Part shown: positions 20,160-63,705 of the stretch, piece by piece
Layout: each line of letters begins with the position of its first letter
How positions within the stretch are numbered: position 1 is the stretch's first letter
Source of the DNA: Oculina patagonica
Taxonomy: Eukaryota
NCBI RefSeq assembly: GCF_052425735.1
Contig: NC_135764.1
Span: 18,414,001 to 18,478,000, forward strand
DNA: 64,000 nucleotides
Reading direction: 5' to 3'
Position numbers and translations under genes: made by a program
Notes under the pieces: generated by a model
What the model was told of the DNA's origin: nothing
Seen by the model: only the letters and a program-made list of their open reading frames with translations
The model's database searches: none

Positions 20160-20852
20160 TCACGGCCGGTAAATGTGACTTCTAGCGGCTGCCATTTCAC
20201 TCAGAGATCGCTCTAGGTTGACTTTCTTAGTGTCAGTGGTTTTACATCTGTTTAGGTGACACAGTCGCACTCTAATACTTCTACCAGCACAGCTTTTCCC
20301 TTCATTTGAAGGAGGAGGGCTCGTGCAACTGCGCTTGGAATATGTTAACCCCCCACCACAGGTTGTAGTACATCTTGACCACCTGGACCACTCTGACCAT
20401 CCTCCATCCACAGAGATGTCTGTTGACAAAATAAAAGATCATCTCTCAAGTGTCCCAATTAGCTATTTTAACAATAGAGTGTTTCTGTCGAGGAACTATC
20501 AGACCGATAGTTCCTCGACAGAAACACTCTATTGTCTTTATTGTTCACCACTAAATTTTCTTCCGCGCGCACATACAGAACAAGCATCGTGAATTATTTT
20601 TACTTTTGAAGATAAAAAACTCAATTGAAAGCCGAAATTTAACAAACGAAACAAAGCCAGACGAGAGATCCACTGAATGCAGTGAATTTGGTTGGGTTTT
20701 TTTGTCTGCAGGCAGCTTGCAATTGTTTACAAAAAACAGTCACGGGCGGGCACTATCGATCCGGACATTTTTAACGAGAGGGCACTATGGGCTGATAGTG
20801 CCCTCCGGCGGACGGGCACTATCGCGTCACGTGTTTAATTTAAACCAATCAA

Positions 20853-20883
<31 letters not shown>

Positions 20884-23800
20884 TCAACATGGAGGCGAAA
20901 CAGAATTTGTGCGGGAATTCCATGTCATTTTTTTTTTTACCAGAATATAATATTTTAATGACTTGAATCTCGGATACTTGTGGAAAATAGCAAAAGAGTT
21001 TAGTTTAGTGAGTTTTAAAAACGTCAGTGTACCGTTATTTGTCAACTGTCAAAATCATGTGTAGGTCTATCGCTATCGTCGTATATAGCATCTAGTACCT
21101 TTTATTACATATCGCATCAAAGGCACATCCTGTCTTGGCTATAAAGTATTTTTTTTGTGCATAAATTGACTCTATTGTGCTCTAATCACGAACGCCTCAA
21201 AACTAAGTTTATGAACTTGACACTTGTTTGGAGCAACTTTTCCAAAAGACAGAGAAAGAAAAATACAAATATTTAGCCATAGGGTGAGGTGTGATGGTGT
21301 GTGGTTGTGCCCGGCACGATACAGATATATTATGTTCTTACGCAAGGCACCTTACCCTCACACAGTCTCTCCATCAGGAGTAACATGCAGGCAACTGTTT
21401 GTAATTGACAATTCCTGCTGCGCTAGTTATTATTTTATCCAACATGGCAGAAATGCCGTTATTTTTATTGTTTTTTTGAAGATTGGTTTCGCTGACGTAC
21501 ACGTACGTGGTAAATTCTGTATTTGTCAGTTGGTGGGGTCTGTAGTAGTCCTTTATGTTATTGTCTGCTTTCTCCAAGTACTATGAGTCATACTAATTGT
21601 AATACCGACGAAACTTTTTCACTGTCAGTATTCCATTACAAACCTTCACTGTTATTTTTCTTTGCTGTACTTTCATCTTCGTGTTTTTGACTAATCATAG
21701 CATCTTGTCCCGTCAGCTTATTAACGAGTCTTGTCAGCGTCTTTGCAGCCTCGGCTAGATTTGCCGCCAATTCGGCATTTTTCACATTTTTCTTGTATTC
21801 GAGTTCTTGTTTTTTCGCATCTTCCTTTTTAGCTTTTGTCTTGTCAACGGGACTGGCCTGTTGTGTCTGGTTATCGTTTTGGGTTCTATTGTCTTTTTTG
21901 TCTGCTTTAGATGCCGTGTCATCAGAATGTATTTGGGAAGACGATTTTACTCCACGAGCTTTAGCTTTTAAAAGCTGTTTGACCAGTGATGCGTAGTTTG
22001 GCAAAGTCGACGTGGACTGTTTTTGACCAAGCGAGTTTAATCTATTTAGCGCTCTTATTCTGGAAGCAATAAGACTGGACAGGGTGGGGGCAAGTCCACC
22101 TTGTACGGCGGCATCTGATACATAGTTACTGTTGTGATTGTTGTAATCAATCATGGTTCTAGCTGGTGGATTTTCCTCTTCTTCTTCATTGGCTTGACTT
22201 AAGTATCCCTCGTTTGACTGCTCATCATACGGAGCTTCGCCCTGTCCGTTGTCGTCTGCAAAAGCCACGTTGGTATTATCATTATTTTCGTCATTGTAGT
22301 TTTCCATTTCATTACCGAACAAAGGAGAGTAGGCCGTGTTGTAGTTGTTGTCTTCAATTGGTGTTTCTTGGTACGGATCTTCGTTGTCTTCAGTTTGCTG
22401 TCTTTCCATTGGAGAATACGGCTGGCTGGCTTGGTTATCACCGTTTATAAACACAGTCGATGGGGCTCTTAAGGGACTGACCTCGTTTGTCCCGTCTAAG
22501 TGAAGCATTGGTGACATCAAATTGTTTTGGCCGTAGGTGGAAGTCGCAAAATTTCTCAGTGGAACAAGAACTTGTTGCTTCTTGACTTTTTCACTGGAAT
22601 GGCTCGCTAGTATATGCTTTTTATTTCCTGAGTGGATTAAGCAAAATGGGTTAGAATGCTAGAATAGACAAGCATGATCAGACTATAGTAAACTGCGCAG
22701 CAGCGGGCATCATTTTCCTTTTTTTTTTAAAGAAAATTCTTGTCTTTTTTTGCCTCATATCAGTCATAAGTTCTCCATTAACTTATATATCTTGATAAAG
22801 TATCGGCATCTTAACATAGAACAATAATCTCTTTTTCTTTCAAATGGATGATAATTCCATGATTTACGTCCAGGTTGTTGTTTCGCCATCTCCGAGAGAG
22901 TCTGACAGCCTCCAATCAAGACTGCTGAACTGCCAACTGGGAAAAAGGTGACAGTCTTTTTTCGCTTCCGAGGAATAAGACCAAAAGCCGAAAAATCTTA
23001 AAATGTTCCTTGTTAAGATTCTCCGGAATCGCAAGGAAAAAAGGCTGAAAAAAACTTAAGAAGTTTCTCAATATATGAAAATAACAATAGAAAGTGAAAA
23101 AAATACTTTACAAAAGTCCTTGAAGAATGTCGAAAATAGTCTGTTGTTTATGAAAAAGAATTAAAGCCGGTTAATTCCACTAAAAAAGGTATATTTTTCT
23201 GTTTATCTACAAACAAAAATTAAAAAAAATGATTTTTCTGGTCTTTTTCATTTCTGAATTTATATTTTTGTGAAAAAAGTAGAATTGCTGGAAGCCTATC
23301 ACTGATTTGAACTGACTTGTACAAACAGGGCCTTATCATTTCCTTTTGCCTCCAAAGCGAATCCTTCTTGTCATGCGAATGAAACCTTTTTAAGTTGAAT
23401 GGTTTTGCACTAAGACTCGTCTTAAAACAGAGTCCACAAGGAAAATGATCTTTTCCTTGCAGTGTAATGCTTGCATTTCTCTGGACGTGAAATTAGCAGT
23501 CTTAATTGGTAAATACACTGTATGTCAACGAACTTAATAAGCGTATAACATTAACTGTATTCCTTAATAAACTATTTTCTGTTTTACCTTACTTCTCAGT
23601 TTTATTTTGCTTTTCTTTGGTCTCCAGATATTAAGCCTTACAAATAAGCCTACGTTCTTAAGAAAAAATGGGTGTAATATAAAAGTGTACAGAGAAAAAT
23701 GGCCTACGAAGAGGAATTACACAGTTTGTCCATTCAGTGATTTGTCATGCAATTTAAAACATAGATCGGTAGTCACTGATCGGCTGTCAATATAGATGAG

Positions 23801-24132
23801 ACTTGTTTGTTTAAGTAGCAATAACGCACACGCATGAAATTATTGTGATGTATTTGTTCAGATCTTTTGTAAATCATTGTTATTTTTTGTCTTTTAGGTT
23901 TGTGCTCGGTACCAGAAGCAAACTGAAATCTAAATGTAGAAAAATTTAGTCCATCGCCTTTCAGACAGGCTTGCCATCATTCTGGAACGAAACAGGTAAT
24001 ACTCTATGTCCGTTTATGAGAAATAAGAAACATAATTTGATCCTGTGAGCCCTTACCTTTTCTTAGCAGACTTCCACCATTTGTTATAAAACATGTTAAT
24101 AGCAACAAGAGAATTAATTTTATGTTTTCCAT
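20160..24132 (-). CDS. Gene A: secreted low-complexity (N/D/E/Q-rich) protein with a C-terminal thrombospondin type-1 repeat, 439 aa (462 aa with optional exon)
   Basis: Exons: 24132-24057 (gccATGG; MENIKLILLLLLTCFITNGGSLLRK signal peptide), optional 22936-22868 (69 nt, in frame), 22627-21644, 20419-20160 (DGGWSEWSRWSRCTTTCGGG..KRSCTSPPPSNEGKSCAG..RLCHLNRC). All introns are GT-AG and phase 1; the total length is divisible by 3. Confidence 0.8.
20471..20535. repeat. Perfect 30-bp-stem hairpin at the end of an intronic MITE-like element (~20460-20880)
   Basis: acaatagagtgtttctgtcgaggaactatc-agacc-gatagttcctcgacagaaacactctattgt. Confidence 0.8.
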
Positions 24133-25689
24133 GGCGGTATCCTGCAAGAAAAAAATATGGCATTTATCAAATATTCTTAATAGTGAGAAATCATGAAACG
24201 TTCAGATTTTGTTCAAGTGTCATGAAAAGGATCGTACATCTACACCTACTCTTAACACCTTGGAAATTCTGTTAGGCAATAAGTTATGATTGTCAGCTAT
24301 GCTTGTTGTTTAAAGGAATAACAATAATAAAACGAATGACCATTAACGTAAAGGCATAGTAAATTTATTATCCTTCAGTCGTCGTTAAGTGCCTCTAATA
24401 GTTTGTCTGAAACTTCGAAAAAGCATGTTAGAGACATAGATTTAATTTTCGTTTTTGTCGTGAAGCTATGGTAAAGTTTAATGATGTAACTTGAAATATA
24501 CGCCGAGCATCACATGTCTCCTCGTCAACAAACGAAATTCCCATTTTAAGAGAAAAAAACGTAAAAAGCAATAGGCACGTGTAGCGAGAATTGTTGTAGA
24601 TCGAGACTGGAAAGACGAAATAAACGCGAATTCAAGAGTAAAAGTTTATTTTTCTCTAACGTTATGGCCCCCAATAACGTCGGATTGCAATTTTGCCGGA
24701 CTCAGCAACTCATCAACCAAGTAGTCGACCTGATGAATGTTATACTTCTTAAAAATAGAGTTAAATTTTGTAACTGTCTGTGCACTTGTAAAGTCAGAAG
24801 ACTATTTCATTAAATGTGGATAGATTTAATATAATTAGCCGCGTATTTATCTTAAGGCTAATGTCAAATAAATATCCGACTCTTCAAATTAAATGTTTAT
24901 CTTTTACGCATTAGTACCGAAACTATGAACGGAAATAACGAAGAAGTAATAACGTACCTTGGGTGTGTCTGAGGAAGTAACGGAGCTTACAGTGAGTGAT
25001 CACATTGAACGTCAAGAGGACAGTGTATTTGATCAACACACTGAAAAGAGGCCACAGACAAAGAAGAGATTAATTATGCTTTATGCAACCTGTTTGTTAT
25101 TAATTGACGAGCATGTGTGACGGGTACCATCTCATTTAAGATATTACCATAAACCAAAAGAAAGCGGCTGTCGTCTTACAACAGAACTCTTTGGCCAACC
25201 CTGTAAAAGTGAGGATCAACTCGAGATAATACCAAGATCAGGGACACAAACAGCCGTGGACTGGTTTAACGATATTTGATTTCTTTACAACTATTTAAAG
25301 TCATTTAGATATTCGCATCTGTTGGAATTCGAATGATTATGCATTTCCACGCATCAATTAAATGACGCCGTTTTAAAAATTATCAAAATCTCGAACTCTC
25401 TTACTGGCTGGTGAAGTTTACATGAGTTTCGACATCAGCAATGCATCTTTACAATTTGTTGCCGCCGGCGCCGAAGGTAAACTACAACCAGCCAGCCTCC
25501 CGCCTTATATGCGGGTGGTTGTTGCCAAGGATGCATTTATTTGGTGCAGGTCGTCTCCAAGAACTCTACCAATGTTACGTTATATTATTTATATTTCCAA
25601 CCACTTTCTTCTTCTTCATTGTGGTAAATAAACTATTATCTTTTGTTGTTTCTTGGTCTCAATTCTACCGAATTAATTATATAGGGAAA

Positions 25690-27025
25690 AGAACCCTATT
25701 CCCGCACAGAGAAATCCACAAGATGACATGGACATCCCCAAACGGCAAGGTGAAGGCACGAAGAGGAGCAGATGTTGGGAGTGACCAGCTGCTGATGGCA
25801 ACGCTGGCTATCAAGCTGCGCAAAACCAAGAAGGGAGTGCTCAGCGACTTGATTTTGCAGACGACATCTGCCTCTTAGCCCATCGCTCAGATGCGCCGAT
25901 CACCCTGCATGGAAAGATAGTTGAAGAAGTCAACGAGTTTACGTACCTTGGCTCCAAGATGACCACCGATGGAGACTCAGAGTCAGAGATTAGAGCAAGG
26001 CTCTCCAAGGCAGGGCAAGCATTTGCCTCCCTCAAGAACATCTGGAAAAGCAAGAAGATCACCCTAAAGACTAAACTCCGCTTCTTCAAGAGTAACGTTC
26101 TCACCACGTTGCTGTATGGGTGTGAGTCATGGAAGGCCACAAAAGCCATTTGCCACAAACTTGACACATTCCAAAATCGATGTCTACGCCGCATTCTGAA
26201 CATCTTATAATAATAATAATAAAACTTTATTTAAACTCGAATTTAGAGTAGCTTAACAAGCTAATATTTCCGAGAACGAAATAGATAACAACAAATTAAA
26301 ATAAAAATTACTATTTACATATTTAAAATTGACTTATATTAACTAATTGAATGGGCTTTGCAGATGTGCCTTTTACAGTCAGATAAGTTACATAGCCTTA
26401 TAAAGTTAGGTAGAGAATTTCATTCTTTTGTTGCCAGATAAGTAAAGGAGTGGAGACCAAAAGTTGTAGTTCTAGGTTTGGGCATTTCCAGTATATAGTT
26501 TCCACGCAGGTTGTATGAAGTAGAACGGAACGAGAACATGTTTCTCATATAGGCTGGATAGTCATTGAAAAATAGACTTTTGTACAAGAGGAATTTACAG
26601 ATGCGTTGATCATGAAGTTGGAGACAGTTTATCTTGTCTAGCAGCACATTATAAGGCGATTCAAAATTACTTAAAAAATCAATCTTCTGGCCTAACATCA
26701 TTTCAAACGCCGAGCTACCCCGGGCAACCTCAACAAACAACATCAGCTCCGAGGTGAAGAAGAGAAGGTGGCGCTGGATCGGACACGTCCTCAGGATGGA
26801 TCCATCATCAATTCCCAGAGTTGCTCTGCACTGGACTCCATCTGGAAAAAGAGCAAGGGGACGACCAAAAGAGACCTGGCGGCGGACAGTTGAAAAAGAG
26901 ATGCGGGAAAGCGGACTCAGCTGGGGAGAGCTGAGAAAGAATGCAAAGAACAGGCAGCAGTGGCGGAATCTGGTAACGGCCTTATGTGCCCAAGGGCACG
27001 AAGAGGACTGAGTGAGCTGAGCTAA
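25690..27025 (+). mobile_element. RTE-clade non-LTR retrotransposon remnant, internally deleted and interrupted
   Basis: Endonuclease pieces TLFPHREIHKMTWTSPNG and RRGADVGSD; RT motif FADDICLL; FTYLGS..IRARLSKAGQAF..LLYGCESW..FQNRCLRRIL; RRWRWIGHVLRM..GKRARGRPKETWRR; stop at 27011 followed by a short tgag-repeat tail. Confidence 0.9.
26207..26681 (-). mobile_element. 5'-truncated LINE 3' end (CR1/L2-like) inserted into the RTE remnant
   Basis: Minus-strand peptide LLYKSLFFNDYPAYM..SYNLRGNYILEMPKPRTTTFGLHSFTY, then AATAAA and a (TTA)n tail. ATCTT is duplicated at 26202-26206 and 26682-26686, and the RTE frame resumes (NIFWPNIISN). Confidence 0.8.
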
Positions 27026-27598
27026 GCACCCGATTTTAGACCTTTTTTTAATTAAATTGAGTGTAATCAGTAAATGGGAAATACTTTTCTCCCTCATTGC
27101 TTCTCCTGTCGTGTTTTTTTTCTTTTTCTTCCCTTAATTTTTACTTTCTTTACATATTCCTAAGAAGTGGGGGCAATGGCGGCGTCCCTGTCTTCTCTTT
27201 CCAAGCCCTACATCGGGAGGGGTAGGGACAGTTTAAGAATAAAGTTGTCTCAACATAATGCCTTGGATGCACAGAGAGTGAGGATTAATTTTTATTAAGG
27301 TTAATATGATACACTGGCAAAAGAAAAAGAGTATTTCCCGCAGGACTCCGAACGAATCAAATTCACCATACGTGCATCGGTTTTTACGTCTTTATTGTTA
27401 TCAATCACAGGACAAGTAATACACAAACCTGGTAAAACATTACATCACAAATAACGGACTATTTAGCGGTTACCTCCGTGAGACCAGTCTTAATGCACTT
27501 CTGGATTCACATGTTTGGACATATAGTAAAGGTAACTGCTTACATTTGTTAGAGCCGTTTCCGTTAACCTCTGAGCTAATTTTGTTCGATTATGGTAT

Positions 27599-30500
27599 TT
27601 ATTTTGTTGTCATGCTGTCACCAGCACGCTGAGATCTTCCAACTTTACCTCTCGCTTTATGTAATCGAGACGTTATAATCTTTTTGTAAACCCTGGAACG
27701 CTTTAATATTCTCCTTAACGGAGACAGACTTATCTTGAAACGTTGAATACGAAAGCCTACTGGAATAGTATTGCGCCTTAACGGAAAACGTCGAAACGAT
27801 TGAGAGAGACTGACTGGAAAGTGTAAGCGTACTCGCTTCCTTAATATTGACTTGTGCCGGGTTTTGAGTAAGCGACGAGGATTAATCTGATTTCCAAGCG
27901 AAGAACCCTTGGAAGCAGCTGCTGAAATAGAATCAAAATATGTGTGAGCTTGGTTTCCTGTTTACTGTGATGGTTGGATCGATATTTGATTCACATGCAT
28001 TTTAAAAAGAGCACATTTGAAATTGCCCGTATGCTATTTCAAGCTCTTTACGTGCATAAAAAAATGTAGCTACAAACTTGAATGTTGTCCTAGTGTATTT
28101 TTTTACAATGTATATTGTCCGGGTATTTTGAGCATCGTGGTAATACTATTTTTCTTCCTAGCTCATAATTAATTCAAAGTCGACACTGTGGTGGAAACCC
28201 ATAATATTGTTATCTTAATTGTATAGGAAGTCACTATCACAGTCAATTAACTCTGCATCGTGTATACCGTCAAAATTGCATTGGACATATTTCTCGTACT
28301 AGCTGATAGACTGCTAACACGAAGGCTAAAACATGTTTAAAACATGTGTAACTCAAATAGTGTACAACTGATTTGTGAAACGTTGCTTATACTGTTTTTT
28401 GTTTTTGGATTGCGTATCTATCTTAAAAAAGTAAAAGCATACTTACGTATGGAACTTCTTTCAACAAACATTGTGTCCGGTCCACTGTCGCCACGTAAAT
28501 CCACGCTGTGATCAAAGGAATATGGGTACCAGCCCCTCAGCGGATGAAACCAGTTTCCTTCAAAAAAATGTTCAGAGTAATAACTTGTTAATTTTCATAC
28601 TTTAGATGTGATTGAAAAACCGCTCTCTTGGAAACATTTTATTGAAGAAAGTAGCTGACATCAGTTATAATATATTAGCATAACAGTAAATGGGTGTACT
28701 GATTTGTTACCAAAGTAGCACATTTTTAAAACACTTAATGACTGGTTTCCCGAGAAACCAGTCATTAAGTGATTTGTTATATGGCTCAACGAAGACTTAG
28801 AAAAATGGCGGTCGTCGCTCAACTTAACATTCGCGGGCAACAGTGCACTGTCACCCTCTGACGTCACAGATTTTACAATGTTGCCCGCTCAGAGATTTCT
28901 GGCGGGAAACAGTTTTACTGTTAGATGCCATGTAACTTCGAAGTAGCCAATGAGAGCGCGCCCTGTTGGGTAGAAAATTTCAGCTATATTTAACAATTAT
29001 TCACCGACACTGAGGTGAATAATGGTTTTAGTATATACCACACAAGTTGAATAACTACCGGACCAAAACATCACTTTCGGTAAACAAAGCGACGCGCGAA
29101 TGCAGTTTGTTCTCTTTAGTTGTTCGGAGGTGAATAGTACTTTGCTTATCACCTCCGAGTTAACCAATCAGCGCGCGCGAAAAGCACTATTCATCTGTGT
29201 GGTATATACTAAAACAAATTACTGTGTTGTCCTCAGATTACAGTTAGTGAAAGAACTCTCAAAAGAAAGAACAGTACAGGAACTCTCTCAAGGAAAGTCA
29301 TGGCATATTATTATAGACATGGTTCGTACAATCTTGAAAAGGTCTTGAATTTTAGCAGTCGTCTTGAAAAGTCCTTGAATTTGGTTAAGTCCATGAAAAG
29401 TACTTGATTTTTTCAGTAGGTCTTGAAAAGTCCTTGAAATTTAGGATTTCTTGCACGCCCTTTTACTTTTCTGATAAATTAAATGATTTTGGTAAGAAAA
29501 ATTTGTTCATGAACGACTTCTAAAATGCGAAATAACTTGCGAAAATGTGGGTGTAAAACGCGAACCCCTACATGAAGCATGATTTAGATCTTTGCTTTTA
29601 TTTCATGCACCAAGGCTTGCACCAGGCCTCTGATGTGGGGTTGTCCACCATGTAGTTTTGTTGGAAGGGGCAACATGGCCGATAGTGAGTAAACATGTAG
29701 CGTTGTTTTGAATTCCTTCGTTTGCAATTCAAGTTAGCTATGGGCAAATGTGTATTCAATCGTAAATGGTTTAAAAGTGATGAAAAGTTCAGCTGGGTTA
29801 AAGAATTTAAAGGCGACAAGCACAAGGCTTTGTGTTGTGTTTGCAACAAAGTGATCGACATCGAACGCATGGGAGAAAGCACTTTGAAGTCTTACATGAA
29901 AGGCAAGAAATATAAAAGGAACACTGTTGTCGTTTTAAAAAAAGTTAAATGCCATCACGATGATCTCCTCAACCAAGCCTGAACTATTTAAAAGTTGTAG
30001 ATGACTTAGGGCCGAATCGCACTATCGGACAAGTTTTAAATGTCATAACATTTTTGACAAAAACAAAATTGTCGCGACAAGTCAGAGACATTTTGAAGAA
30101 AACAAAAGGTGTAATTATTAGTACAATAGCTCTGCACGTGCTTCTGGCATCCCTGTACATTTCTCAGCACGGCCGTCTTTGGCAAACATCAAATATGCAG
30201 TACAACGCGGTAAAATAATTCGCATTTAACATGTTTAAAGTACGCGTGTTCTCATGCAGTAGAATAATGAGTCGTCTCAAGATAACTTTTTCTTTTCTTA
30301 TTCTTACATTTGGCCAAAACACTTCACTTATAAATATGCTTTGCCTCTCGCGAAAAGATTTTGCGGCTGGATTATGATAGTGAGAGCCACATCACGGTGC
30401 ATACTACACCCAACAATTTTTGAGTGCGTGTTGTTTTTCGGTGCAATTTGGACCAAACACAATAGCCAATCAACAACATATTGTTATCTGGCATTACGGG

Positions 30501-32199
30501 GTATGGGAATGTGACTTGTCATGAATTGTCCTACCTTGAGGCAGGACAACGGCCCCTTTGATGATTTGTCCGTTTTGACAAAATTTACCCTTGTCCAACA
30601 AGTCGTTCGTTCTTGTTTTTGCAATTGTTTGACAAAATGTATCGCGCGTGCAACGCGGACCAATCATAAGACAACTGCTTCTTTGTTTTCCTGAAATGTT
30701 GGACAAGTTCTAGGTCTCAAAAAACGCATTCGCACTTGTTTTCTGTAACAAGTGACACGTTAATGATGAAATCTACCAATTGTTACAAAATTTGTCTGCT
30801 AGTGCGATTTGGCCCTTAGTTGAGTGTTTAAGAAATGAAAAAGAGGGCGGAGAAATCAGAGACTTTTGACTCAGTCCTTGAAAACAAGTTTTTGTCCTTG
30901 AAAAGTCCTTGAATTTTGTTTGTCTGAAGTTGTACGAACCATGTATAGATTCTTACGTGCACTGACATTACATATAGGTACGTGGGAGCTGAAAATAGTA
31001 TTATAGAAAAGTTGTTTTCAACCAGCTCCTTTCTCGACTAATATACCAGTAGTAACTTACTATTAACATGACCGTATCCATGATATCCGTGCCCATAACC
31101 ATGACGAAATCCATAACCAGCTGGAACATGTCCAAAATGCAGTCCATACCTAAAACGGCCAGGATAACCATAACCAAAGCCGTGTCTTAGCGAGCTGTAC
31201 CATGGACCACGTGCAAAGCCATGTGCAAAGGGATAGCTTCCACCGTATCCTAAACCGTGTCTCCACTGACCGTGTCTGTAGAACATATGGTGACCAAATG
31301 GGCCAAGCGGTCCATAATGTTGTGGTAAATGAACTGGGTAGACACCGTGTGGATGATATCCATGATAAACCGGGATGTTGAGCGGATGACGATGCATTAA
31401 GTGATGGATGTACTCGCCAGCTGCAGTTGGCACACCATTAGGCATCAAGGTCATGTGGCTCGCCGAGGGAAGCAACGAACTGATGCTCGGTGGAGCTGCT
31501 AGTGTAAAGATGTCGTGTTTTTTGTGTCTAGAAATCAGATTAGGTTTGATCGGCTTGTGAATAATTCTGTGTCTCTTGGTCTGATGACCACGCTTTTCTG
31601 TAAACAAACAAAAAAAAACAAACAAAGGAAAACGTATCAAGGAGTTCACAATGTCGATGCTCCTAAATTTAAACCTTTAAGTAGTTACGTATGATTAATC
31701 GATCGGTTGTTCGCTTGAAAATATACATGTCATTTGCAAAACAAAATAAGTTGCCTGCACGAATAAACAGCGACCAGACAACGTTTTCGCTTACTCGAAA
31801 AAAAGTCGCTTATTAAAACTCAACTTTATCTCAAACTTTCCTAGAGAATTGATCCGCATGATGTATAATTATACATAGAGTTCTGGCGTATAGGCATTTT
31901 CAGCATTTTAATTTTTCAATTAACAAATTACACAAAAGGACAACAGTTTAAATTGCTCGTACAATTCGGTAAAAGTTCGGGCTATTCCATAGGTTATTTT
32001 TTTTTTAAATGTAAAAGCATGACGAACAATAAGCATTGAAGAAACGAGATTCATCGAAAAATCTGTAAAAGACCAATATAAAAGCAATAGTAAAGCGATG
32101 AAATCTTGGGAAAGAAGACTTACCTATTGTTCGCTTTGGTTGAACCATTGTTGAAGTAAGAACAAGCAAGGTGAAGTATATTAAAACTTTCTCCTTCAT
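27599..32199 (-). CDS. Gene B: secreted His/Gly/Tyr/Pro-rich protein with an Arg/Lys-rich C-terminus, 348 aa
   Basis: Exons: 32199-32124 (MKEKVLIYFTLLVLTSTMVQPKRTI), 31597-31061 (HGY-rich), 28557-28447 (NWFHPLRGWYPYSFDH...), 27921-27599 (PRRLLKTRHKSILRKRVRLH...MTTK*). All GT-AG and phase 1; 1047 nt with no internal stop. Confidence 0.8.
29318..30943 (+). mobile_element. Deleted hAT-like DNA transposon with a 6-bp TSD, in intron 2 of gene B
   Basis: TIR catggttcgtacaa/ttgtacgaaccatg; TATAGA on both flanks (29312-29317, 30944-30949); subterminal cttgaaaagtccttgaa repeats; residual BED-finger-like transposase N-terminus MGKCVFNRKW..FSW..KALCCVCNKVIDI..MGESTLKSYM. Confidence 0.75.
30009..30815. 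mobile_element. PIF/Harbinger-like MITE nested in the hAT-like element
   Basis: TIR gggccgaatcgcacta/tagtgcgatttggccc; TTA duplicated at 30006-30008 and 30816-30818. Confidence 0.75.
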
Positions 32200-32859
32200 G
32201 TTTCTTGTTCACGCTCGTTTCCTAGAATGAAACTGGTCTCAGTATATCGTTACATCAACGAGATGTAAAGAAAATGAGACCTTACAAGGTGTTATTACTT
32301 ACGGAATTTCAGTGAGTCCAACAGTTATTTTTTCGGAGCGTGTGATTGTTTTTCTTTGAAATTCAAAACAGTTATGGTTGCTACCAAATTTTACAGGTGA
32401 CAGATAAAACTAAACATTCCGTAGCTTGAACGTCAGAGACTGTTGTTGATCATTTTCTCAATTAATAGGGACTCATGTTATGATTATACCCAGTCTGCCG
32501 GCCTTGACAGAAACACTTAAGATACGTACTTTCGGCTAATTTTCTCAGTTGCAGTACTTTTAAGTTTATTACGAGTTTAAAGATAAGACAAAAAAGTAGT
32601 GGAGGAACACTACTCATTTGTTTTCGTTCATCATCTAAACTAGATCTAAACCTATTTTTCTGCACGTTGGGTCGACAGAAATCGAGTTAAAGCAAGAATG
32701 TCTTTGCTCTTAAACTTAACAAGCTATATTTTAGTGATTTAGAACAGTAAACGTAGTGGATAAAAGGCTAAACTAATGAAAACATTATGATTTTACGGTC
32801 CTTAAATTTGGAATCAACAAATCAGAAGAACTTTCTCTTTCTTTCCTAAACGCTTCAAC

Positions 32860-36592: not shown

Positions 36593-38683
36593 TTAAGGTT
36601 TTGTAACTTTCTTTGACGTGGATTTAGATTTCATAGCTTTTATAAGTTTCTGTCTTTCAAGCTCCGTTTCTTTTCTTATTTCCTCCATTCTTTCAGCGAC
36701 ATCTTCCATTGGAGAGCTGTGTAAGTTTCCTGTGTTATCCAAAATCTGATCTTCTACCATGGTAGTATCAATGGCTGTAGAAAAGTAAAGCAAATCAGTA
36801 AGCATTTTTATGTACCTACTCATTCTGCCGGAAAATTATCAAAGTGTACTTCAATCAAGGAAATGATGTAACACAAGAACAGCTGTCGCAATGCACGTTT
36901 TCGTCAATCATAACTTTTGAATTTGTATTCATTATATGCACCATGATTTCCTGCATGGCCTCTGACTTGTAAGCAGCTCGATGTTCCGGATTTACGAGTT
37001 GTTCTCGCAGCGAATATAATTGTCTGATTATCGTATTTTTTCTTAAAGCCTGATTCTCTGCAAAAACTGGTTATATATAATATAATTGTTATTAGGACAG
37101 TTTGGCAATCACATGATTTTGTTCACAATACAATCAACTCGTAGCAGAATTGTGTTCTCTCCCATTTTGAAATAATGGCGTTTGTCTGACACTCTATTGG
37201 AATCAGCTTTGAAACTTTCATTTTCCAGTAAGCAAGGCGTATACCAATTTCGAATCTTATCATCGTAAACAAAAATGTTGTAGAGAAAACAATGCCACTT
37301 AAAGAGTAAGAGATTGACATTTTTTGATTTATTCTTACGATAAACTCCATGTCCTCCAAGGAACGCTGGCCCCGAGTTATAATACCCATGTACATCAGCC
37401 GCATGGCTCATAAACCCCGGATATTGCGGAGGTATTATTGGTCGTGGAATAAGAGTCCCTGTGACAGGCTCCTGATACATCCCGTCGTTTGGATCTGCTA
37501 GAAAAACAGGCCCAGACGCCTGCATATGGGGCCAGTGGGTATGATAACCGTGGCGAAGACCCCAAGGTATTGTACGATGGTATGAAGCTGGGTGTGGATA
37601 GTAGCCGTGAATCCCCGCGTGCGGAAAGCCAGGATGAGCGTGCAAGAGGTTAGATCCAGGAAACAAGGGATAGCCATGGTGTAGAGGATTTGGTACTCCA
37701 TGCGGTCCAATGAATAATTCGTTTTCAGCATTTGCAGGCGGAAGATAGGGTCCCTCTAGGATGGAGGTCGCTACTGGTGGAACAGCAACAACTTCCTGTC
37801 GCCGATATAGACTGCTGTGATGATTCAGTGGGTACCTAGTACCAAGTTTTTGGTTCCCTTGCAGATTAATTTATAAAAGATTGAGTTCATTGCTTATGAT
37901 TTATGATTCATGTATCTATGAACAAGAACTAGAATAATTGTCATGCGTTGAAATTATTTTAAGGTTTCACAGAAAACAAACCTCAGTAGTTGTCTTATTT
38001 CACACTGCTCCAACAAACATTTCGATAAACATGCATAGCTAACATTTTAAAGTAAACTTAGTCCGCACACTTAACCGAAACTTCGCGTGTTGGAACAAGA
38101 CTTTTGGCCTTCACTTCAGACATTCTCTAAAATAATGCTTTGTCGGCTACATCTGTGGATTTTTTATTTTTCATTTTCCGCATTTTAATAACTTGTTTTA
38201 CCGTTTAAATGCCAATAGACTATGCGACCGCGGTTTTCATTTCATACATTATGTGGTGGACAGTGGACTTTACAGTGATGTCATATTACTCTTGAAAATC
38301 ATTCTATTCAAGCTTATTATATTCACGTGATAATGGAACTATATTCAGAAAGATAATGGTTCTTCAGAGAGCATCACACGAATGAAAATGCCCGTTTTAC
38401 ATACAAGGATGAATAATCTACTTGGCAAGACCATGCTGAACAGCCTTAATCCATCGATATAACCCTTATTAGCAAAAGCGACCGAAAATTAGACTCTTAC
38501 CCGAGGTCGATCTCGAGGAAATTGAAATGATGTGATAAATCGCATTACTTTACACTGAGTTGCCAGCATGTTAAAAAATCTCTGAAAAACTACTGTGTGA
38601 AACATACCTGTTACCGGTCGAGAAAACACCTCCTGGCCAAAGAAAACAAAGATGGCGAGTCCATGCATAAAAGCTAAATACAT
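36593..38683 (-). CDS. Gene C: secreted His/Pro/Gly/Tyr-rich protein with a charged C-terminus, 258 aa
   Basis: Exons: 38683-38608 (MYLAFMHGLAIFVFFGQEVFSRPVT), 37857-37339 (..LHHGYP..HAHPGFPHAGIHGYYPHPASYH..LRHGYHTHWPH), 36774-36593 (..MEEIRKETELERQKLIKAMK..). GT-AG and phase 1; 777 nt. An alternative ATG lies at 38698. Confidence 0.8.
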
Positions 38684-39153
38684 CGTGCAAGCTGGCATAT
38701 GCAAAGAGCAAATTTAATTTTACTGTCCCATTCTTTCAAAATAATACTGAACTGTAAGTAACGGAGTGAGACAGACACGTAACCCAACCCACCACTACAG
38801 GGATCAAACTTTGTTTATGCTTGCCAACGGGAAAACTTGACAAAATAAGTGTAAACTACAGTGGTTTAAACACTTCTTTTAAAGGGAGTTTACGAAACGG
38901 GACCCTTTACGTTTTAAAAACAATAAATTACGCAATGGCATCGTCAGTGGACATCACACTAATGGTTTTCTTGCGCGAAAAATTAAAGGAATAAAAACAT
39001 ATTTCGAAACTAATTGTGGATCTCCAAATTAATAATTGGATTTTACATTTATTTCTTAAAAAATGAACGCAATTGATATGTTTACTCCCAAATAACAATT
39101 TTCCAAAGTAACAATTAAAAAATGTTTGTTAAAGCAGCGGTGGATTGCCAGTA

Positions 39154-40416
39154 TCAGCCTCGTGGGTGCTCGACAGCAATTAATGGAAAGAAGATAAATG
39201 GATCCTTTGAGTCATAGCTGTTGTCTTTGTTCAGGATTCTGTAGGCGGGGCCCGTCAAGTATGACTTATGGTCTTCGCGTGCTGTAGTCTCGTGTGGCAC
39301 GCCACGAGCATCTTTCATGATAGGAACGCTAATGAGGCCTAGTTTGGCTTCTAGAACAAAAGAAGCAGATCAAGAGGTCTTTTAAAACCTTCATTTAAGG
39401 GTTACAAACTAATTCAACAACTGTTACTATGATGTCTCCGAGTGAGGCTTCAGGTGGTAACCGACCTGCAACTCTACTTCTTATTCTTTGACAAATGCCT
39501 CTGCGGTATGCACGACAATCATCATAACACAAAAAGATGGCTTTAAATTTAGCATAACTCCCCTTTCTCTTATCCCCAAATCAAGCTACTCCCCCCCCCC
39601 CCCGTGAAATCCTTCATTCCTTTCCTTCCAGTAGATAAGTTATAGTCGGTCCCTCACAACAGTATTCGAGAGCGAAACATTGCACTTTTTACGGACACCA
39701 CATTGGGAAACTGTTCAGGGGTCTCGGTGTGGAAAAAAGAAAAAGGCTTTGAATTAAACCAATCTTATAAAGGTTATGACAGGTGTAAGCCTAGTCATCA
39801 AGAAAATCAAGGAAATAGTCATATCAAATCAAGCAAGACTTGCATTGCCTCAAAATATTCCAAATTAGTCCTTGGTGCTGAATCGAAATTTATCTGTTTG
39901 GTTTCGTTTATCGTCACAATCAACCTGTATAGCTAAATCACAACAATGGCAGGTTATGTTGGCCGACAACACATGGACATTATTTTTTAACAGTCTTTGT
40001 TAGGCAGTTCCCTTGCTGTTATTTTATTGCAGTATTAAGATTATATTAGACTCTTCTTAACCGACATAACTGTAAAATATGAATTTTCACGCTTATTTAA
40101 CGTTGACAAACAGAAGTAATTATGCGTCCAAATTTGTTTATTATACTTTGCCACAAAGAAAGATTTTTGATCGAAAAGTACAACACACGTTCCCAAAGAC
40201 ACCTTTCTTAAACTTCCCTATTTAGTATTTGTTGGTGAGAAAAAACCAAACCAAGGCAGGTTCATCTATTTTTTCAACGAAGCATCACTTTTTATTTACT
40301 GATGCCAGCGGTTAAACAAACTTACCGTCTTTAATTCTTTCCCTTGGCGGTCTTCCGTTCGCATCTTTAAATGTCAGGATTATTAAAAAGAGCAAACGTT
40401 TTAAGGATTTTGCCAT
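39154..40416 (-). CDS. Gene E: small secreted protein or peptide precursor, 95 aa, ending in ...EHPRG*
   Basis: Not in the ORF track. Exon 40416-40326 (MAKSLKRLLFLIILTFKDANGRPPRERIKD, donor G|gtaagt) joins in phase 1 to 39350-39154 (acceptor ttcttttgttctag; EAKLGLISVPIMKDARGVPHE...DPFIFFPLIAVEHPRG*). AATAAA lies ~100 nt downstream. Confidence 0.65.
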
Positions 40417-41728
40417 TACATTTCCTCAGGACCTCAATAAATCAAATTCTCTGTTTTACGGAACTGATAAAATTATAGGTGTTGACACAAAGGGGACTGG
40501 AAAGGAGTTATTGCCTTTTAAATCCATAGAAAAGACGAACCAGTCTTCAATGATGAGCCCGCGTTCTCATTGGATATTCCTAAGTAACCGATCACTGAGA
40601 CGTTTGGGATTGAACGGCTCAGGTATTGTTTAACAAGTGCTTCACATATGACTAAGCTACTGGCCATTCTCGTATCTCTTCACATTTGACAGAATAATGT
40701 GTGTTTGGCGAACGTTTATCTTAAAGGATAATTTATGATGACTTTCAAAATGAGCGTGTATCTTATTAGCGTTTAATCCTAGACACATCTGGCAACTTTA
40801 TTAAAACTGCCATCTTGAATCTGCCCATTGTGTTCTTATCACTTTTAAATAACGTAAGTGATAATTATATTGTAACGCCGCTTTCGAATTGGAATGCAAT
40901 TCATTCCTTTGGAATTGCAATTCATTCAATTGTTTTTTTTCTTGTTTCTAGCGATAGAAGAAATGATAATGGGTGCATTCCCTTTTTTTAAAATTTATGC
41001 ATTTTCACAAAAACAAGACAGTGCATAAACGATACGCTACTTACAAACGACTTTTACAAAAAAATACATTGAAGATTACAATAGTCAGTGCATTCAATAA
41101 AAAACATGAAATTTGCGGTGAGAATTTTTCAACAAATGGAACAGAGTAATATTAATCACGAAAACAAAACGGAAAGAAGCTGTTCCTTTTGAAAATTCTC
41201 TTTGTGATAACACCGCGAGAAAACATGGCGATCGAGGGTGAAACTTTTCTGCTTCATCTTCCGTCTTTATGAAGCCTTGGAGAAAGTTCGAGGGAAAACC
41301 TCTCGCTGCTTGAAAAGAATGGCTCTCTATTTACACTCGACAGGAATTGGATTAATTTGAATCAATTCAACGGGTTAATTTTAACGTTTTTTTGCTAAGT
41401 TGTTGACCTTGCTCTGTGAACGAACAGTCTGGTTGTACCAAATGGAACAGAAATTTTTCGGTCATTTCGGGAGAAATGGAAAAGAGGAAAACTTCTGAAT
41501 GTATTCTATTTTTGCGAAAATTTTCAATTGGGAAGAACCGTTCCATTTGATTTTTCACCGGAACAACCGGTTTCTGCGTACAAACGGAAAGCGCCCAACA
41601 TATCCTTCATCAGCCTACTAAAATGGATACAAAGTGTAGACTTAACTCAATATACACTTGTAACACAAATAATTATGCATTATGATAAATGTGTCACTGA
41701 ACACCAGAATTACTATATATAAGGGGCG

Positions 41729-44700
41729 TTATCTTTCGTCATTTTCAGAGTCATTGTGCTCCTCATCAACATCGTCATTGTCAGCGTCGTCATAGTCACG
41801 CAGCTGATGTTTCGGTGGAGGCTCATCTCTCTCACTGTCATAATCATCAGTGTCATCATCGTCTTCATCGCCATCTTCGTTCTCATTGTCCAATGGATAT
41901 CTAACTTTCGGACGCCTTGGGTGAAAAAATGGAAACCCCATTCCAGGCCTGGGGTGGGGTGTAACAAATGGTAAATATGGATTTACACGAGGAAGAAAAA
42001 GCGGTTGGTGAAACATAGGTTGCCGCCTAAATCCAAATGGTATCGCGCCCTCTTGCTGGGTAAGGATGGGATTTTGAAGACCTCGCATAAAATTAGACAA
42101 TTGAACGTTTTGAAGGTTTTGCAATGGAGGTACGTCTTGCTGGTTTTCTAGTAGTTTGGCCTTCAGCTGGAGTCGAGGGAGGTGATTCTCCATCTGGTCT
42201 TCAATTAGTTTTCTCTGCTCTGCTAGGTTCATTTCTTGTATTTGCGGGCTATTTCCTGGCAGGTTGCCATTTTCACCCTGTGTATTTTCTAAGTCGGGCA
42301 TTTGGGACATTGGGCGGAACGGACCTTGCGTCATCATATCTCGTGCGTCCAGCATACCTCCATTCAAACTAGGCATTCTATTCGTGTGGTGAGAATCGAC
42401 TTCTCGTCCGATTTCCGTACTTTTCATGCGTGCAATGAAGTTAAGAAGATCCAAATAGTTTGCACGTTTAGCAGAGAGGTCCTCGTCATCCTTATCCAAA
42501 GAAGACGGCGGGTTAGTATCCTTGTAACTTTCTTGTATTTCTGTTTTGGCAGTTTTGCTAAACTGATTGTTTTTTTCGGGCAACTGACTGGAAGAGTCTT
42601 GTTTATTTGCTCTTTGCTTAGCAATGTGTGTTGATTTAGCTTTTTTCACCACTTTATCCAAAAGCTTGAGTATTGCAGCCCGAAGTTCGATTATGGTTTT
42701 GTTTTTGGAGGCATCAGATTTGCCTTCTATGTTAAATATGCTGACCTTTTCGTCGTCCTCCTCTCCTTTTGATCCCGACAGCTGGAAATGTCCATCGCTT
42801 ATTTTTCTTTTGATAGCTTGAGCATCTCTGGAATGATCTCTATAAAGTGCTTTTAAAAGTTTTCGAAACTGGGATCCAACTATGATTTTCTTAGCAAAGT
42901 GGACGTTCTGAGGATTTTTTACTAAAACATCCTTCCTCGTGCCTGGCTGAGAAATAAACTTGACATTCTGACAACAACTGAATGCTTTTGAAGAATTAGA
43001 TGATCTCTTTTCTTTAAAAGGTGTACTGTCTGTATGTTTCCTGCAAATATGAATTCTAGTTTAGTTGTTTTTTAATCATAATCAAAACTAACTTTAAAAG
43101 AAAGATGAACTGTTCAACGATAAAGTGTTCTTAAGAATTGATGTGCTATGTGCTTTGTAAACTGTGTTGGTATAGGTGAAGTTTTTTTTATTAACAGCTT
43201 TTATTTACATCACGTTACAAAGGAAAAAAAAGAAAAAAAAAACAGAAGTACCATCAATATTCACATAAAAGATCTAATTTACATATATGCATTCAATAAG
43301 CTATAGAAGATTAAAGGTTCATAGCACTTAAAAGTATTCTCATTAAATGTATTCTCAGGCATGCATGGCTTTTCCTTTTTCCAGTGAAAACTGTGTTTTA
43401 TGATGGGCACCAAAAGAAGAAGGGAAGCCTGGAAATCCTTCTATTTTGGGGTTTACTTCTTTTGTTCTGCAGGTCCATATGAAATACCTGGCCACAAGAA
43501 AGTAGAAGTATTGTTTTGTGTGGAAAAGGGTATCCGACCTTAGACCAATGATTATAGCGGGGGCAAGTGTGTTGGATTTCAACATTATTTGATTTTGAGC
43601 CAACCATTTCATAAAGTCCTGCCAGAAACAAAAAGTCTTGCTACAGGTCCAGAATAAATGTATAAGGGACTCTTTCACAGTTCCACAAAAGGTACAGATA
43701 TCGTTTTCTCTTAAGCCGATTTTTTCTTAAGAAAGTCATTTGTCGCCAGTCTTCTATGAAGTAGTTTAAACTGAAAAATTATTAATTTGGTAGCTTTTGT
43801 GCTGCAGAAAGGGAGTCTGTAAGCCATCTCCCAGTTAATTTCTTCTGAGCATTCTAGCTAGACTGCAGTCAACACACCACTTCTCTTGGCTTTTCGTAGG
43901 GCTGTTTTGTTTATCGCTGACTAGCTTTTCATATGCGATTCTATTGGGCTTAGAAACTTTTGTGAAGTTGTCAACAAAGGTGCTTAGTTTTTGTTTTTTA
44001 CGTATTGTTTTTTTTTTTGTGTCATTTCTTACAGATTTTATGCACAATACGACACCATGATAAGTAAGAAAATTTGTTTTAGTGTCAAAGCGTTCCTTAA
44101 ACTCCGGGAAAGAGGAACTTCTCAGCGTCTTGTCAGTTAATGTCGGAGGAAGCGAAAGCCAGCCATTCCCATTTTTACAATCCCTGGTATACTTCGTTAA
44201 ATGGACGCTACAATTAGTACCCTTTTACAAGAAAACGGATACAAAAAATCTGTGTTGACTTAGCGTATAACAAACCAGCTATTAATGTTTTTCGCGCTCT
44301 TTAATTTTTATAAGCGTTGAAACAATGACAGCTAGTAAGCGATTTCCTTCAACATTTTTTTTACGCAAACACTACCAAAAAGAATAGAAACAAAACCCCG
44401 CTCTGTCTATAGATCTCGTCGCTTTTCCCACACTCGAAATTCCAAGATATATTTAAGTGTTTGTCATAAATATACGTTCGCCTTCTGCCCCGGTATTAGC
44501 CATCTGGACCACTACCCATGATCACAAAGCGAATCGTGCACATGCTATACCTAGATAGAAGGTGTGTACCTGTGAAACGCTTGCTCCATGTGCGTTTTCT
44601 CCACTTTCGATCGTGTTGTTTCACTTCTTTTCTCCACAGCTCTAACTTTGGGAATCAGTTTGTTATTTTTCCATCGATTAAGTATTTTGGTGGGCTGCCT

Positions 44701-47109
44701 TCCCTGGATGGTAATGCACTCTGAAGATGGTTTAATAAGCGTTGTTAATGTCTATGTCATCTGTAAAAACGTTCTGTTATAGTTAACTTTACCCAAATCG
44801 AGTTCAATAATACTCAACAACAGTTGAAGTATTAATGCTTTTCAAGGTCACTGATCTTATTACTTGACCTACTTAGAAGAATCTGGAGGAGTATTTATCA
44901 AATAAATGAACTGATAAATTCAGCTAATTGTTGTAAAAGATGACAGCAGCTATTTTGCCAGCTTGATAGCAATTCCATTGTCACGGAAAAATAATATATG
45001 GCCCTTTTAGTTTTAAAAATGCATTTAACACAAGTGAGTAGTCATTGTTTATCGCTTGGCGGGGTGGGGGAGGATTTGGGGGTTTACTTGATTTTGGGAG
45101 GAGTGAAGGGGGGGGGGGGTTCATTCGGGTAGAGCTGTGCGAGCAGGGGTGGGGGTTAAGAAAAAGAGAAATTTCCTGTTTAGCTTTTTTGTTATCTCAC
45201 TTTATAAACATACAAGTGTCATTTGTAACTGTTACATTTAATATAATTTTATCAAACCAATTATACGAAAAAATAAATGAAAAACACAGTTTTCTTTTAA
45301 GTAAATGTAGTTTGTTTTTTTTTTCCTACCCTGTTGAGTAAAGGGTTTTTTTTTATGATAAGCCAACTCGAAGAAAGAATCGCTACACTGGTTTCAGCAA
45401 TGTCCTCGGTGAGATTGAGGATAAGGCAACGAACTCGACATTTATTTAGAAGAACATGGACTAGCAAAGATAGGGAAGAGTATAGAGAAGATATGAGCAA
45501 CGTCATGGAGCCGGAGGGTACTCACTATTCGGCCAGTCTCCGCCCAGAAGGGGTACCTTTTTCAGGCTGTAGGTATATGAAAGGGTAGGGATTTCACAAG
45601 TTGGAGTATACAGAAGTGTAGGTAAACTGTCATTTAGGTTTTAACAAGGACCTTTCAAAACATCTAAAACAGACACACCGAATCGTCGTGTCGTTTAAAG
45701 TACTTTAAGAGGGTTTTCAACTAAAAAATGAAGGAAAGAGATGCAGTATCCTTTTTGTAGGTTGGTGAAAAGGGGTACATTATCTCCAATCGATGGTACA
45801 CGAAAGAGTACCATTTCTGTCAATAGGGTGTATGAATGGGTAACTGGAAAGAATACTGTAAACCCTTTGAAATTGGAGCAACCCCATATTTTTTCCGAGA
45901 CCCCCTCCCCCCCCCCCGCCAAGTTACTAGTGGAAGAGGGAGAAGACGGTGATAGTGCTGTCGAGAGTGACAAAGGTGGAAGTGTTGTGCTAGTAAACTT
46001 GAATTGCCTCCCTGATGACAATGATGCGATGCAGTTCGTAACTGATAAATTGTTTTTCAGTGGTGCATGCCGCAACGTGTTAAAAACATGCAAGTAATTT
46101 ATATCACAAAACATGTATGAGAGACACGGGGGGGGGGGGGGGGGGGGGGAGGTGGGAAGTGTACTTGGAATGGTACCAGTCATGGGGGGTGCTGAAACAA
46201 TAGCCATTCTTAGACGATGGATCGGATATTTTATATTGTTCATAATACAGAATCCTCCAAACTCCCCACCCCCTCCCACCCCAGGCGATAAATAAGGACT
46301 GGTCCCTAATGAAACTGCGAAGAAAATCCATGTTTTGTTTAAATAAACACTGGTGATGCAGGATGCACTGCAAAATATAATCTAGATAAATTCCATTTAA
46401 CAATCAGTATTACAAGGAAATAATTAAAATTGAAAACGCCCCTCTATATAATGTGGCGAATGTCAACCACCAATCAAGGGAAAAATTGTTTCAGTCTATC
46501 ATAGCATTTTTCGTTCTCCCAAACTCAAGTGTTTTTTGAAAGGAGGAATTGATAGCATTGCCAAAACAAATATAAGAGAAACTTTGTTCCTTTTTCATCG
46601 ATCGTGTTAAATTTTGTTGGCTTTAAATTTGGGTAGAATTATATTTGTTAATTATAAGAGTAAGGAAAACGAAGAATCCATATCAAACGGATTATTCCTC
46701 TTTTGTGGTTGTCAAACATCAATCAGAAGAAGAACTGTTCCAGTTTATAACACAATCTTGAATCGTGGTGAACATAAATGTCTGAGAAAGAGACGTGATA
46801 CCATGGCCAACTATATATCAAAACAAAACTAACAATACAATAAATATTACGTTGTTGCCTCTGCAATTAACCCAAGGGCACAGAATTAGGAGGATCATAT
46901 ACTTTGACTGTATTATTGTACACCAAACGGGGCTTTTACCGAACCATACTTGGATAATACAAAATATTTGAAAATTATATGTTTATTTGTCCGAGTGTTA
47001 TGAAACATAGTGAGGAGTATTTTGTCATTGTGATTTGCCCACATTGCTTACCTGACTCTTGGTTTATCGCAAAACACAGCACCATCAAGCTCAACACGGC
47101 TGCCTTCAT
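41729..47109 (-). CDS. Gene D: secreted low-complexity protein with a basic N-half, Q/N/P/F-rich middle and Asp/Glu-rich C-terminal tail, 506 aa
   Basis: Exons: 47109-47052 (MKAAVLSLMVLCFAINQES, phase 1), 44720-44570 (ECITIQGRQ...QAFH, ends phase 2), 43040-41729 (starts phase 2 and runs into the 310-aa ORF ending ENEDGDEDDDDTDDYDSE...DNDDVDEEHNDSENDER). Phases match; 1521 nt. Confidence 0.8.
43195..44125 (-). mobile_element. Truncated Tx1/L1-like LINE 3' end (post-RT zinc-binding region), in an intron of gene D
   Basis: FQFKLLHRRLATN..ENDICTFCG..ESLIHLFWTCSKT..FW..ARYFIW with frameshifts, followed by an AT-rich 3' UTR. Confidence 0.75.
45040..46308. mobile_element. Degenerate MITE or composite with G-rich inverted ends
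   Basis: agtcattgtttatcgcttggcgggg (45040) is the inverted counterpart of ccccaggcgataaataaggactggtccc|taa (46280-46308). The interior contains an aggggtacc-type repeat resembling one at ~33240-33330. Confidence 0.45.
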
Positions 47110-52638: not shown

Positions 52639-52783
52639 NNNNNNNNNNNNNNNNNNNNNNNNNNNNNNNNNNNNNNNNNNNNNNNNNNNNNNNNNNNNNN
52701 NNNNNNNNNNNNNNNNNNNNNNNNNNNNNNNNNNNNNNNNNNNNNNNNNNNNNNNNNNNNNNNNNNNNNNNNNNNNNNNNNNN
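52639..52783. other. Assembly gap (N run)
   Basis: Run of n characters. Confidence 1.
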
Positions 52784-63537: not shown

Positions 63538-63705
63538 NNNNNNNNNNNNNNNNNNNNNNNNNNNNNNNNNNNNNNNNNNNNNNNNNNNNNNNNNNNNNNN
63601 NNNNNNNNNNNNNNNNNNNNNNNNNNNNNNNNNNNNNNNNNNNNNNNNNNNNNNNNNNNNNNNNNNNNNNNNNNNNNNNNNNNNNNNNNNNNNNNNNNNN
63701 NNNNN
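63538..63705. other. Assembly gap (N run)
   Basis: Run of n characters. Confidence 1.

Follow-up and report, generated by a model that had tools for sequence, protein, structure and literature searches.

Corals rely on secreted mucus, matrix, adhesive and skeleton, and many of the genes that underlie these materials are uncharacterised orphans. The analysis presented here concerns a stretch of 64,000 nucleotides from the coral Oculina patagonica (NCBI RefSeq assembly GCF_052425735.1, contig NC_135764.1, positions 18,414,001 to 18,478,000 of the forward strand), which is called the window below and is numbered from its first letter. Within it, five neighbouring genes on the minus strand, designated A to E, encode secreted proteins, and these genes form a block that has been kept together by evolution, with order and strand conserved in corals.

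The nearest known counterpart is the vertebrate SCPP cluster (caseins, enamel proteins and SIBLINGs), with which an initial annotation of the window, made from the letters alone, had compared the five genes. SCPP genes are known for phase-0 introns and for an S-x-E phosphorylation motif near the leader. The comparison stands as far as composition and arrangement are concerned: in both cases the genes are clustered, their products are secreted, compositionally biased and (for the block, by prediction) disordered, the members are mutually unalignable, one of them carries an RGD motif, and the leader occupies its own small exon. Physically, the block comprises five genes in 27 kb, on one strand and in conserved order. 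It does not stand as homology. Specifically, the block proteins have no Pfam match to the casein, enamelin or osteoregulin families, and the Atlas scores to casein, enamelin and osteoregulin (0.63-0.71) lie below the trust level of that tool. The intron after the leader is in phase 1 in all five genes rather than in phase 0, S-x-E is almost absent (three occurrences in A, one in D and none in B, C or E), and common descent of the five genes is not demonstrable.

Several cnidarian systems are also comparable in part. Coral skeletal organic matrix proteins (SAARPs, galaxins, USOMPs, coadhesin) are likewise secreted, and some are acidic while others contain TSP1; the block differs in that the Stylophora accessions of A, B and D are absent from the Stylophora skeletal-proteome table and the accessions and motifs of all five from the supplements of two further papers, and C and E predate skeleton formation. 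Like the cnidarian TSR proteins, A possesses a genuine TSP1, recognisable by its WSxWS and CxxxCGGG signatures, but this repeat is single and C-terminal, it follows about 340 residues without a recognised domain, and the other four genes have none. Spinalin is reportedly a Gly/His-rich spine protein of Hydra nematocysts with a charged tail. Its resemblance to the block proteins, as a secreted cnidarian protein that is Gly/His-rich and then charged, is one of composition, and B and C have just 9-11% Gly and 8-9% His, as opposed to the far higher values of spinalin. E may be likened to amidated peptide precursors through its leader and its C-terminal Gly, a potential amide donor, whereas D shares with the granins only an acidic composition and dibasic sites, no Pfam family having been found for P0095 or P0048 when gene D was tested.

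Conservation of gene order

The genes are transcribed in the order D > E > C > B > A, and all are spliced. Their spans in the window (D 47109-41729, E 40416-39154, C 38683-36593, B 32199-27599 and A 24132-20160) had been given correctly to the base in the initial annotation, as had the fact that they are consecutive on the minus strand. Its description of the genes as hidden has to be abandoned: chromosome CM126641.1 (GCA_052425735.1) already lists all five, the E of 95 amino acids (aa) included, as "uncharacterized protein", and the RefSeq proteins of A and D are placed there with gene spans of precisely the lengths found in the window. Packing is tight at the upstream end of the block, where the gaps between D and E and between E and C are each less than about 0.5 kb. 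The 3′ end of D lies at about 41035 and exon 1 of E reaches to about 40650-40800, while the polyadenylation signal of E at 39053 is close to the start of C at about 38695.

Synteny in other cnidarians had been proposed as a check, and it was examined by tblastn of the five gene models against the loci of relatives. Stylophora and two further coral assemblies show D-E-C-B-A with order and strand unchanged, so that the arrangement is kept in at least four coral genomes including Oculina. In a close relative (loci L007 and L002) the full series reads homeobox-D-E-C-B-A-MFS. In Stylophora (L001) homeobox-D-E-C is present, B and A are merged in an early annotation (SpisGene8432, a single protein of 650 aa), and the named orthologs are all located on a single scaffold of 699,694 bp. 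In a more distant coral (L006 and L003) D-E-C is followed, after a gap of about 2.7 kb between the two loci, by the tail of B, then A and an MFS gene. Named orthologs of B are LOC110051239 in Orbicella and LOC111328409 in Stylophora. The conserved exon of E in Stylophora (L001 14892-15089, 85% identity) has no gene called on it in the listed annotation.

Part of the block extends beyond corals. When C was used as a profile query against 1.84 billion representatives, just seven proteins came back, among them the C ortholog LOC116615559 of the sea anemone Nematostella vectensis. At this locus (L008; assembly GCA_932526225 / GCF_932526225, jaNemVect1) there is an E-like exon of the same acceptor phase, ending in ...KHSQG-stop, which shares its strand with LOC116615559 and is situated 4 kb upstream of it. 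Judged by these sequences, the E-C pair is older than the stony corals and comes from their common ancestor with sea anemones.

The Nematostella E-like gene has peculiarities of its own. Its last 25 codons and stop form the unit of a 76-bp tandem array with about nine copies (L008 6098-6786). A reading of this array as a multi-copy neuropeptide precursor was rejected, as the 76-bp unit is out of frame and a stop ends each copy. The array is succeeded by one of 34 bp, and a third array, of 69 bp, is located upstream at 5511-5877. The Nematostella annotation (L008 1488-6175) fuses an Exo_endo_phos_2 endonuclease open reading frame of 493 aa to the E-like terminal exon; the true first exon of the gene was not found at L008.

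Gene models and transcription

RNA contigs from three runs (X1, X3 and X7) were placed on 36200-42199, and in these runs they contain three CT..AC joints, equivalent to GT..AG on the minus strand, at 36774/37339, 37857/38608 and 39350/40326. The GT-AG junctions predicted earlier for C and E are thereby confirmed in RNA. One joint of C, when read as 37856/38607, fits equally well one base on, which gives exon ends of 37857 and 38608. Gene C has three coding exons (38683-38608, 37857-37339 and 36774-36593) and encodes 258 aa, or 253 aa in RefSeq, where it begins at the second Met; an Illumina adapter at 38695 in run X3 places its transcription start near that position. Gene E has two coding exons (40416-40326 and 39350-39154; 95 aa), joined in all three runs. 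Its first exon extends upstream to at least 40647, and an AATAAA is found at 39053.

The models of A and D equal RefSeq proteins. The three coding exons of A (24132-24057, 22627-21644 and 20419-20160; 439 aa), modelled from homology and consensus splice sites, give a protein identical to XP_078376365.1; its large exon had also matched an O. patagonica protein at 99% identity. D also has three coding exons (47109-47052, 44720-44570 and 43040-41729), encodes 506 aa, or 511 aa from the upstream ATG at 47124 with which RefSeq begins, and equals O. patagonica XP_078376360.1. The middle exon was located through homology to exon 2 of Stylophora and restores the phase; a two-exon D, possible only through a weaker acceptor, was discarded. 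The 3′ untranslated region of D runs to about 41035, and RNA contigs cover 41034-42199.

Gene B required help from orthologs, which revealed that an exon of 37 residues (28557-28447) separates the His/Gly/Tyr-rich exon from the basic tail. The resulting four coding exons (32199-32124, 31597-31061, 28557-28447 and 27918-27599, the last alternatively from 27921; about 347 aa) match the RefSeq models of Orbicella and Stylophora as well as 1.3-kb Logan transcript contigs of other corals, which must be spliced, since they carry the full architecture. The last exon has a CAGCAG tandem acceptor at 27918-27921, with the frame kept either way (347 or 348 aa). The annotated B of Oculina, of 349 aa (L005 1934-11512, corresponding to window 32199-22621), reaches into exon 2 of A.

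Transcription of A and B is indicated by a comparison of sequence words. RNA runs from five studies contain 0.14-0.26 of the words of the A-B stretch (21644-31597), a share roughly equal to that of the exons, which make up about one fifth of the stretch; A and B are therefore transcribed too. Seven of these runs also contain the C-E-D stretch. No information came from a polyA raw-read run (X23), none of whose reads mapped to the stretch.

D, E and C are separate transcription units with occasional read-through. In run X1 a single RNA contig (depth 32.6) is unbroken over 38607-39345, from the last exon of E to the donor of the first exon of C, while runs X3 and X7 have zero coverage at 38800-38999, between E and C. 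The read-through in X1 may be allele-specific. The same run shows a 10-bp deletion at 38697, beside the transcription start of C.

Protein features and possible processing

Each of the five proteins begins with a hydrophobic stretch (10-residue Kyte-Doolittle maximum 2.1-3.3), and a hydrophobicity scan found no later membrane-like window in any of them, in agreement with the signal peptides assigned earlier. Pfam searches with exon translations and with full-length proteins and orthologs yielded nothing beyond the TSP_1 of A, so that one TSP1 is indeed the sole recognised domain, and the biased compositions that had been described (His/Gly/Tyr/Pro-rich, Arg-rich or Asp/Glu-rich) are borne out in B, C and D.

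In A, the leader is followed by a basic propeptide ending in KVKK, an acidic Asn/Asp/Glu-rich region, helix-like blocks, the C-terminal TSP1 and a short tail. The TSP_1 match covers residues 362-412 at 37-40 bits, against a gathering cut-off of 21.6, and includes the motifs WSEWSRWS and CTTTCGGG. B (R 11%, G 11%, H 9%) consists of a leader, a basic propeptide, a His/Gly/Tyr-rich region, the 37-residue exon with the sequence DLRGDSGP, which contains an RGD, and an Arg/Lys-rich tail. DLRGDSGP is retained in all four full-length orthologs, namely those of Oculina, Orbicella, Stylophora and a fourth coral transcript.

C (P 12%, G 9%, H 8%) has a leader, a short propeptide that ends in a conserved dibasic pair followed by Gln (RR, or KK in Nematostella), and a charged, helix-like C-terminal exon. 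Its alignment shows two invariant blocks on either side of a variable His/Pro/Gly/Tyr-rich spacer. C is predicted to be disordered, the AlphaFold model having a predicted local distance difference test (pLDDT) score of 46 and no secondary structure. In D the leader is accompanied by a conserved Cys-Cys pair, helix-like blocks that are likewise conserved and a Pro-rich basic stretch, and the tail, rich in Asp and Glu, terminates in ...NDER. D has 13 dibasic sites and is probably disordered as well, to go by the low-confidence Atlas model of its Stylophora ortholog (pLDDT 0.37). E is a small secreted protein with the C-terminus ...EHPRG-stop; the Gly that immediately precedes this stop does not vary across five species, Nematostella among them. 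Its AlphaFold model is weakly beta (pLDDT 61, predicted template modelling score 0.34). A Foldseek search of the PDB with this model gave no match better than an E-value of 1, sequence searches of the PDB with the profiles of E and C were empty, and the Atlas offered no named neighbour for E.

Some of these features would suit a set of precursors that neurons or gland cells release by regulated secretion, in which case E and C would give rise to processed, possibly amidated or pyroglutamyl peptides, and D would be a granin-like acidic packaging protein. The terminal Gly of E, invariant from coral to anemone, the conserved RR/KK before Gln in C, and the acidic composition and 13 dibasic sites of D fit such a role, and E and C are the most constrained genes of the block. 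However, the C-terminal motif occurs just once in E, and conservation extends over all of its 65-70 residues, in contrast to the multi-copy design typical of cnidarian neuropeptide precursors; no granin or hormone family is among the Pfam matches, and the TSP1 of A and the RGD of B suggest matrix or adhesion instead. Peptide precursors appear a rather unlikely explanation of the block.

Selective constraint and relatedness

Codon alignments were made with the close relative (L002/L007), Stylophora (L001) and the distant coral (L003/L006). All five genes are under purifying selection, with ratios of non-synonymous to synonymous substitution rates (dN/dS) of 0.05-0.08 for E, 0.09-0.21 for C, 0.16-0.24 for A, 0.07-0.32 for B and 0.25-0.40 for D. 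The identity of E is 95% to L007, 85% to Stylophora, 75% to L006 and 46% to Nematostella, and it is conserved along its whole length. The characterisation of the proteins as fast-evolving and of low complexity thus holds for D and for parts of A and B, but not for the strongly conserved C and E. For A and D, 31 and 30 homologs were found, respectively.

No relationship among the five could be detected. When the family profiles were compared by hhalign in all ten pairs, the best result (B against C) had a P of 0.0075, against 0.012 for a reversed control; comparisons of N-terminal 90-residue profiles were no better than reversed-sequence controls, and BLASTP of B against C gave nothing above controls. 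The term tandem cluster is therefore apt for five neighbours on one strand, but not in the sense of tandem duplicates, the families being without detectable mutual similarity. What the five have in common is that their first coding exon is small and has its end in phase 1 (coding segments of 76, 76, 76, 91 and 58 nt in A, B, C, E and D). A, B and C also have a common layout of leader, basic propeptide, conserved dibasic pair and hydrophobic-Pro motif, which has no statistical support and is an unproven lead. Plausibly, though far from assuredly, each gene represents a different, undescribed family restricted to cnidarians.

Genes without mutual similarity may also be neighbours with no shared function. 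Long-range regulatory elements, for example those of the NK-like homeobox gene that lies about 6 kb upstream of D (53359-55296, minus strand), could hold bystanders in place because rearrangement is selected against, as in a genomic regulatory block. The homeobox gene is indeed found upstream of D in Oculina, in L007 and in Stylophora, the five families are unrelated by sequence, and the depth ratios of C, E and D differ among RNA samples. On the other hand, there is no homeodomain match within 10 kb upstream of D in L006 or near the E-C pair of Nematostella. Bystanders are also usually a mixed set, whereas the members of this block are uniformly secreted and domain-poor and share one strand, with D, E and C within 0.5 kb of each other. 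This is a serious possibility, if an unlikely one.

Relation to the skeleton

Among the functions suggested for the locus in the initial annotation was the skeletal organic matrix, and this option is weakened by the present results. A biomineralisation locus, as a coral counterpart of the vertebrate SCPP cluster, would be expected to encode secreted, clustered and compositionally biased proteins, as the block does. B has an RGD, as do SIBLING proteins, and in the language-model features of the Atlas C and the ortholog of D are nearest to casein, enamelin, MEPE and cuticle proteins (0.63-0.82, to be taken as leads only). S-x-E motifs, however, are nearly absent, and Nematostella, an animal that lacks a skeleton, has the E-C pair, so that this pair cannot be skeleton-specific. 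The Stylophora accessions XP_022788499, XP_022788554, XP_022788570, PFX26874 and PFX26888, which represent A, B and D, are absent from the accession table of the Stylophora skeletal proteome in PMC7115838. Likewise, neither the accessions nor the conserved motifs of the five families occur in the supplements of two Oculina/comparative skeletal-proteome papers (PMC7902050 and PMC9532382). Skeletal proteomes are incomplete, and such absences are weak negative evidence; together with the Nematostella pair they make a skeletal matrix locus unlikely, and as a full account of the block it is given little credence here.

Literature searches by identifier (LOC numbers, accessions of the XP, PFX and KAL series, and locus tags) and by six peptide motifs conserved in the families found no mention of these genes in the papers searched, consistent with the earlier statement that no description of the locus was known.

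A shared secretory programme as the favoured explanation

The conserved arrangement suggests common control of the five genes. The block may be regarded as an evolutionarily fixed set of five separate units, each of which would encode cargo of the secretory pathway. We tentatively prefer to explain the block by a single secretory cell programme that would discharge all five products together into a soft extracellular layer, be it a matrix, a mucus or an adhesive, rather than into the skeleton; shared regulation would then hold the block together. If about one gene in ten is assumed to be secreted, a row of five leader-bearing genes on one strand is unlikely to arise by chance.

Going by their sequences, A, B and C could be made as precursors, with a basic propeptide of about 20-30 residues and a conserved dibasic pair (KK, KK and RR, respectively) at which a proprotein convertase would cut. 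The TSP1 repeat would allow A to bind partners in the matrix or on the cell surface. In B, the conserved RGD would serve for binding to integrin-type receptors and the polycationic tail for binding to polyanions. The invariant C-terminal glycine of E could become an amide.

Several points weigh against this explanation. Co-expression of the five genes in one cell type is presumed, and the depth ratios of the C, E and D contigs vary across the three RNA runs, depth being a poor measure in any case. Paralogy was considered and rejected, there being no similarity beyond reversed-sequence controls either at full length or at the N-terminus. In Nematostella, only the E-C pair was found within 10 kb on either side of the C gene. 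The spacers between C and B and between B and A are 3-4 kb long and full of transposon debris. Finally, the leaders were called by a hydrophobicity heuristic and not by SignalP, and motifs as short as an RGD tripeptide or a dibasic pair may owe their conservation to something else. Of the co-regulated locus proposed in the initial annotation, the conserved unit of secreted-protein genes is observed, while co-regulation and a single structure or secretion are things that we infer.

A more elaborate version can be formulated, in which the block is a hexacorallian 'secretome cassette' with an ancient E-C core that D, B and A joined in the stony-coral lineage. It would form a co-regulated organic interface between tissue and substrate or skeleton, with C as an amelogenin-like His/Pro-rich scaffold, B as an RGD anchor, A as a TSP1 linker and D as an acidic component, and would be a convergent, non-homologous counterpart of the SCPP genes. 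This picture is speculative and very unlikely to hold in full.

Surroundings and spacers of the block

In GCA_052425735.1 the genes are listed in the order homeodomain gene (225 aa), D (511), E (95), C (253), an 89-aa model, B (349), A (439) and two MFS transporters. The 89-aa model (32209-33093, minus strand), directly upstream of B, is the sole additional annotated model among the five genes. It is a transposon-derived fragment and no sixth member: its open reading frame has 39% identity (E-value 1e-11) to a repeat fragment on the opposite strand at 26754-27011. The earlier observation that no other host gene lies between the five thus remains valid, this model being a fragment of a dispersed repeat. 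Between A and B, the spacer is occupied at 25400-27150 (no strand assigned) by remnants of transposons, consisting of DUF6451 and a repeat fragment, with the DUF6451 match at 25959-26210 on the plus strand (E-value 3e-11). Runs of N occur at 52639-52783 (145 bases) and 63538-63705 (168 bases), both outside the gene block.

Implications

What is new here is the purifying selection on the five genes, their lack of mutual similarity, their conserved order, the E-C pair of Nematostella and the RGD in B. The block provides five well-supported, strongly constrained candidates for coral secreted materials, with exact gene models and named orthologs in Stylophora, Orbicella and Nematostella. Two of them, E and C, are testable directly, as they are also present in Nematostella, which is genetically manipulable.

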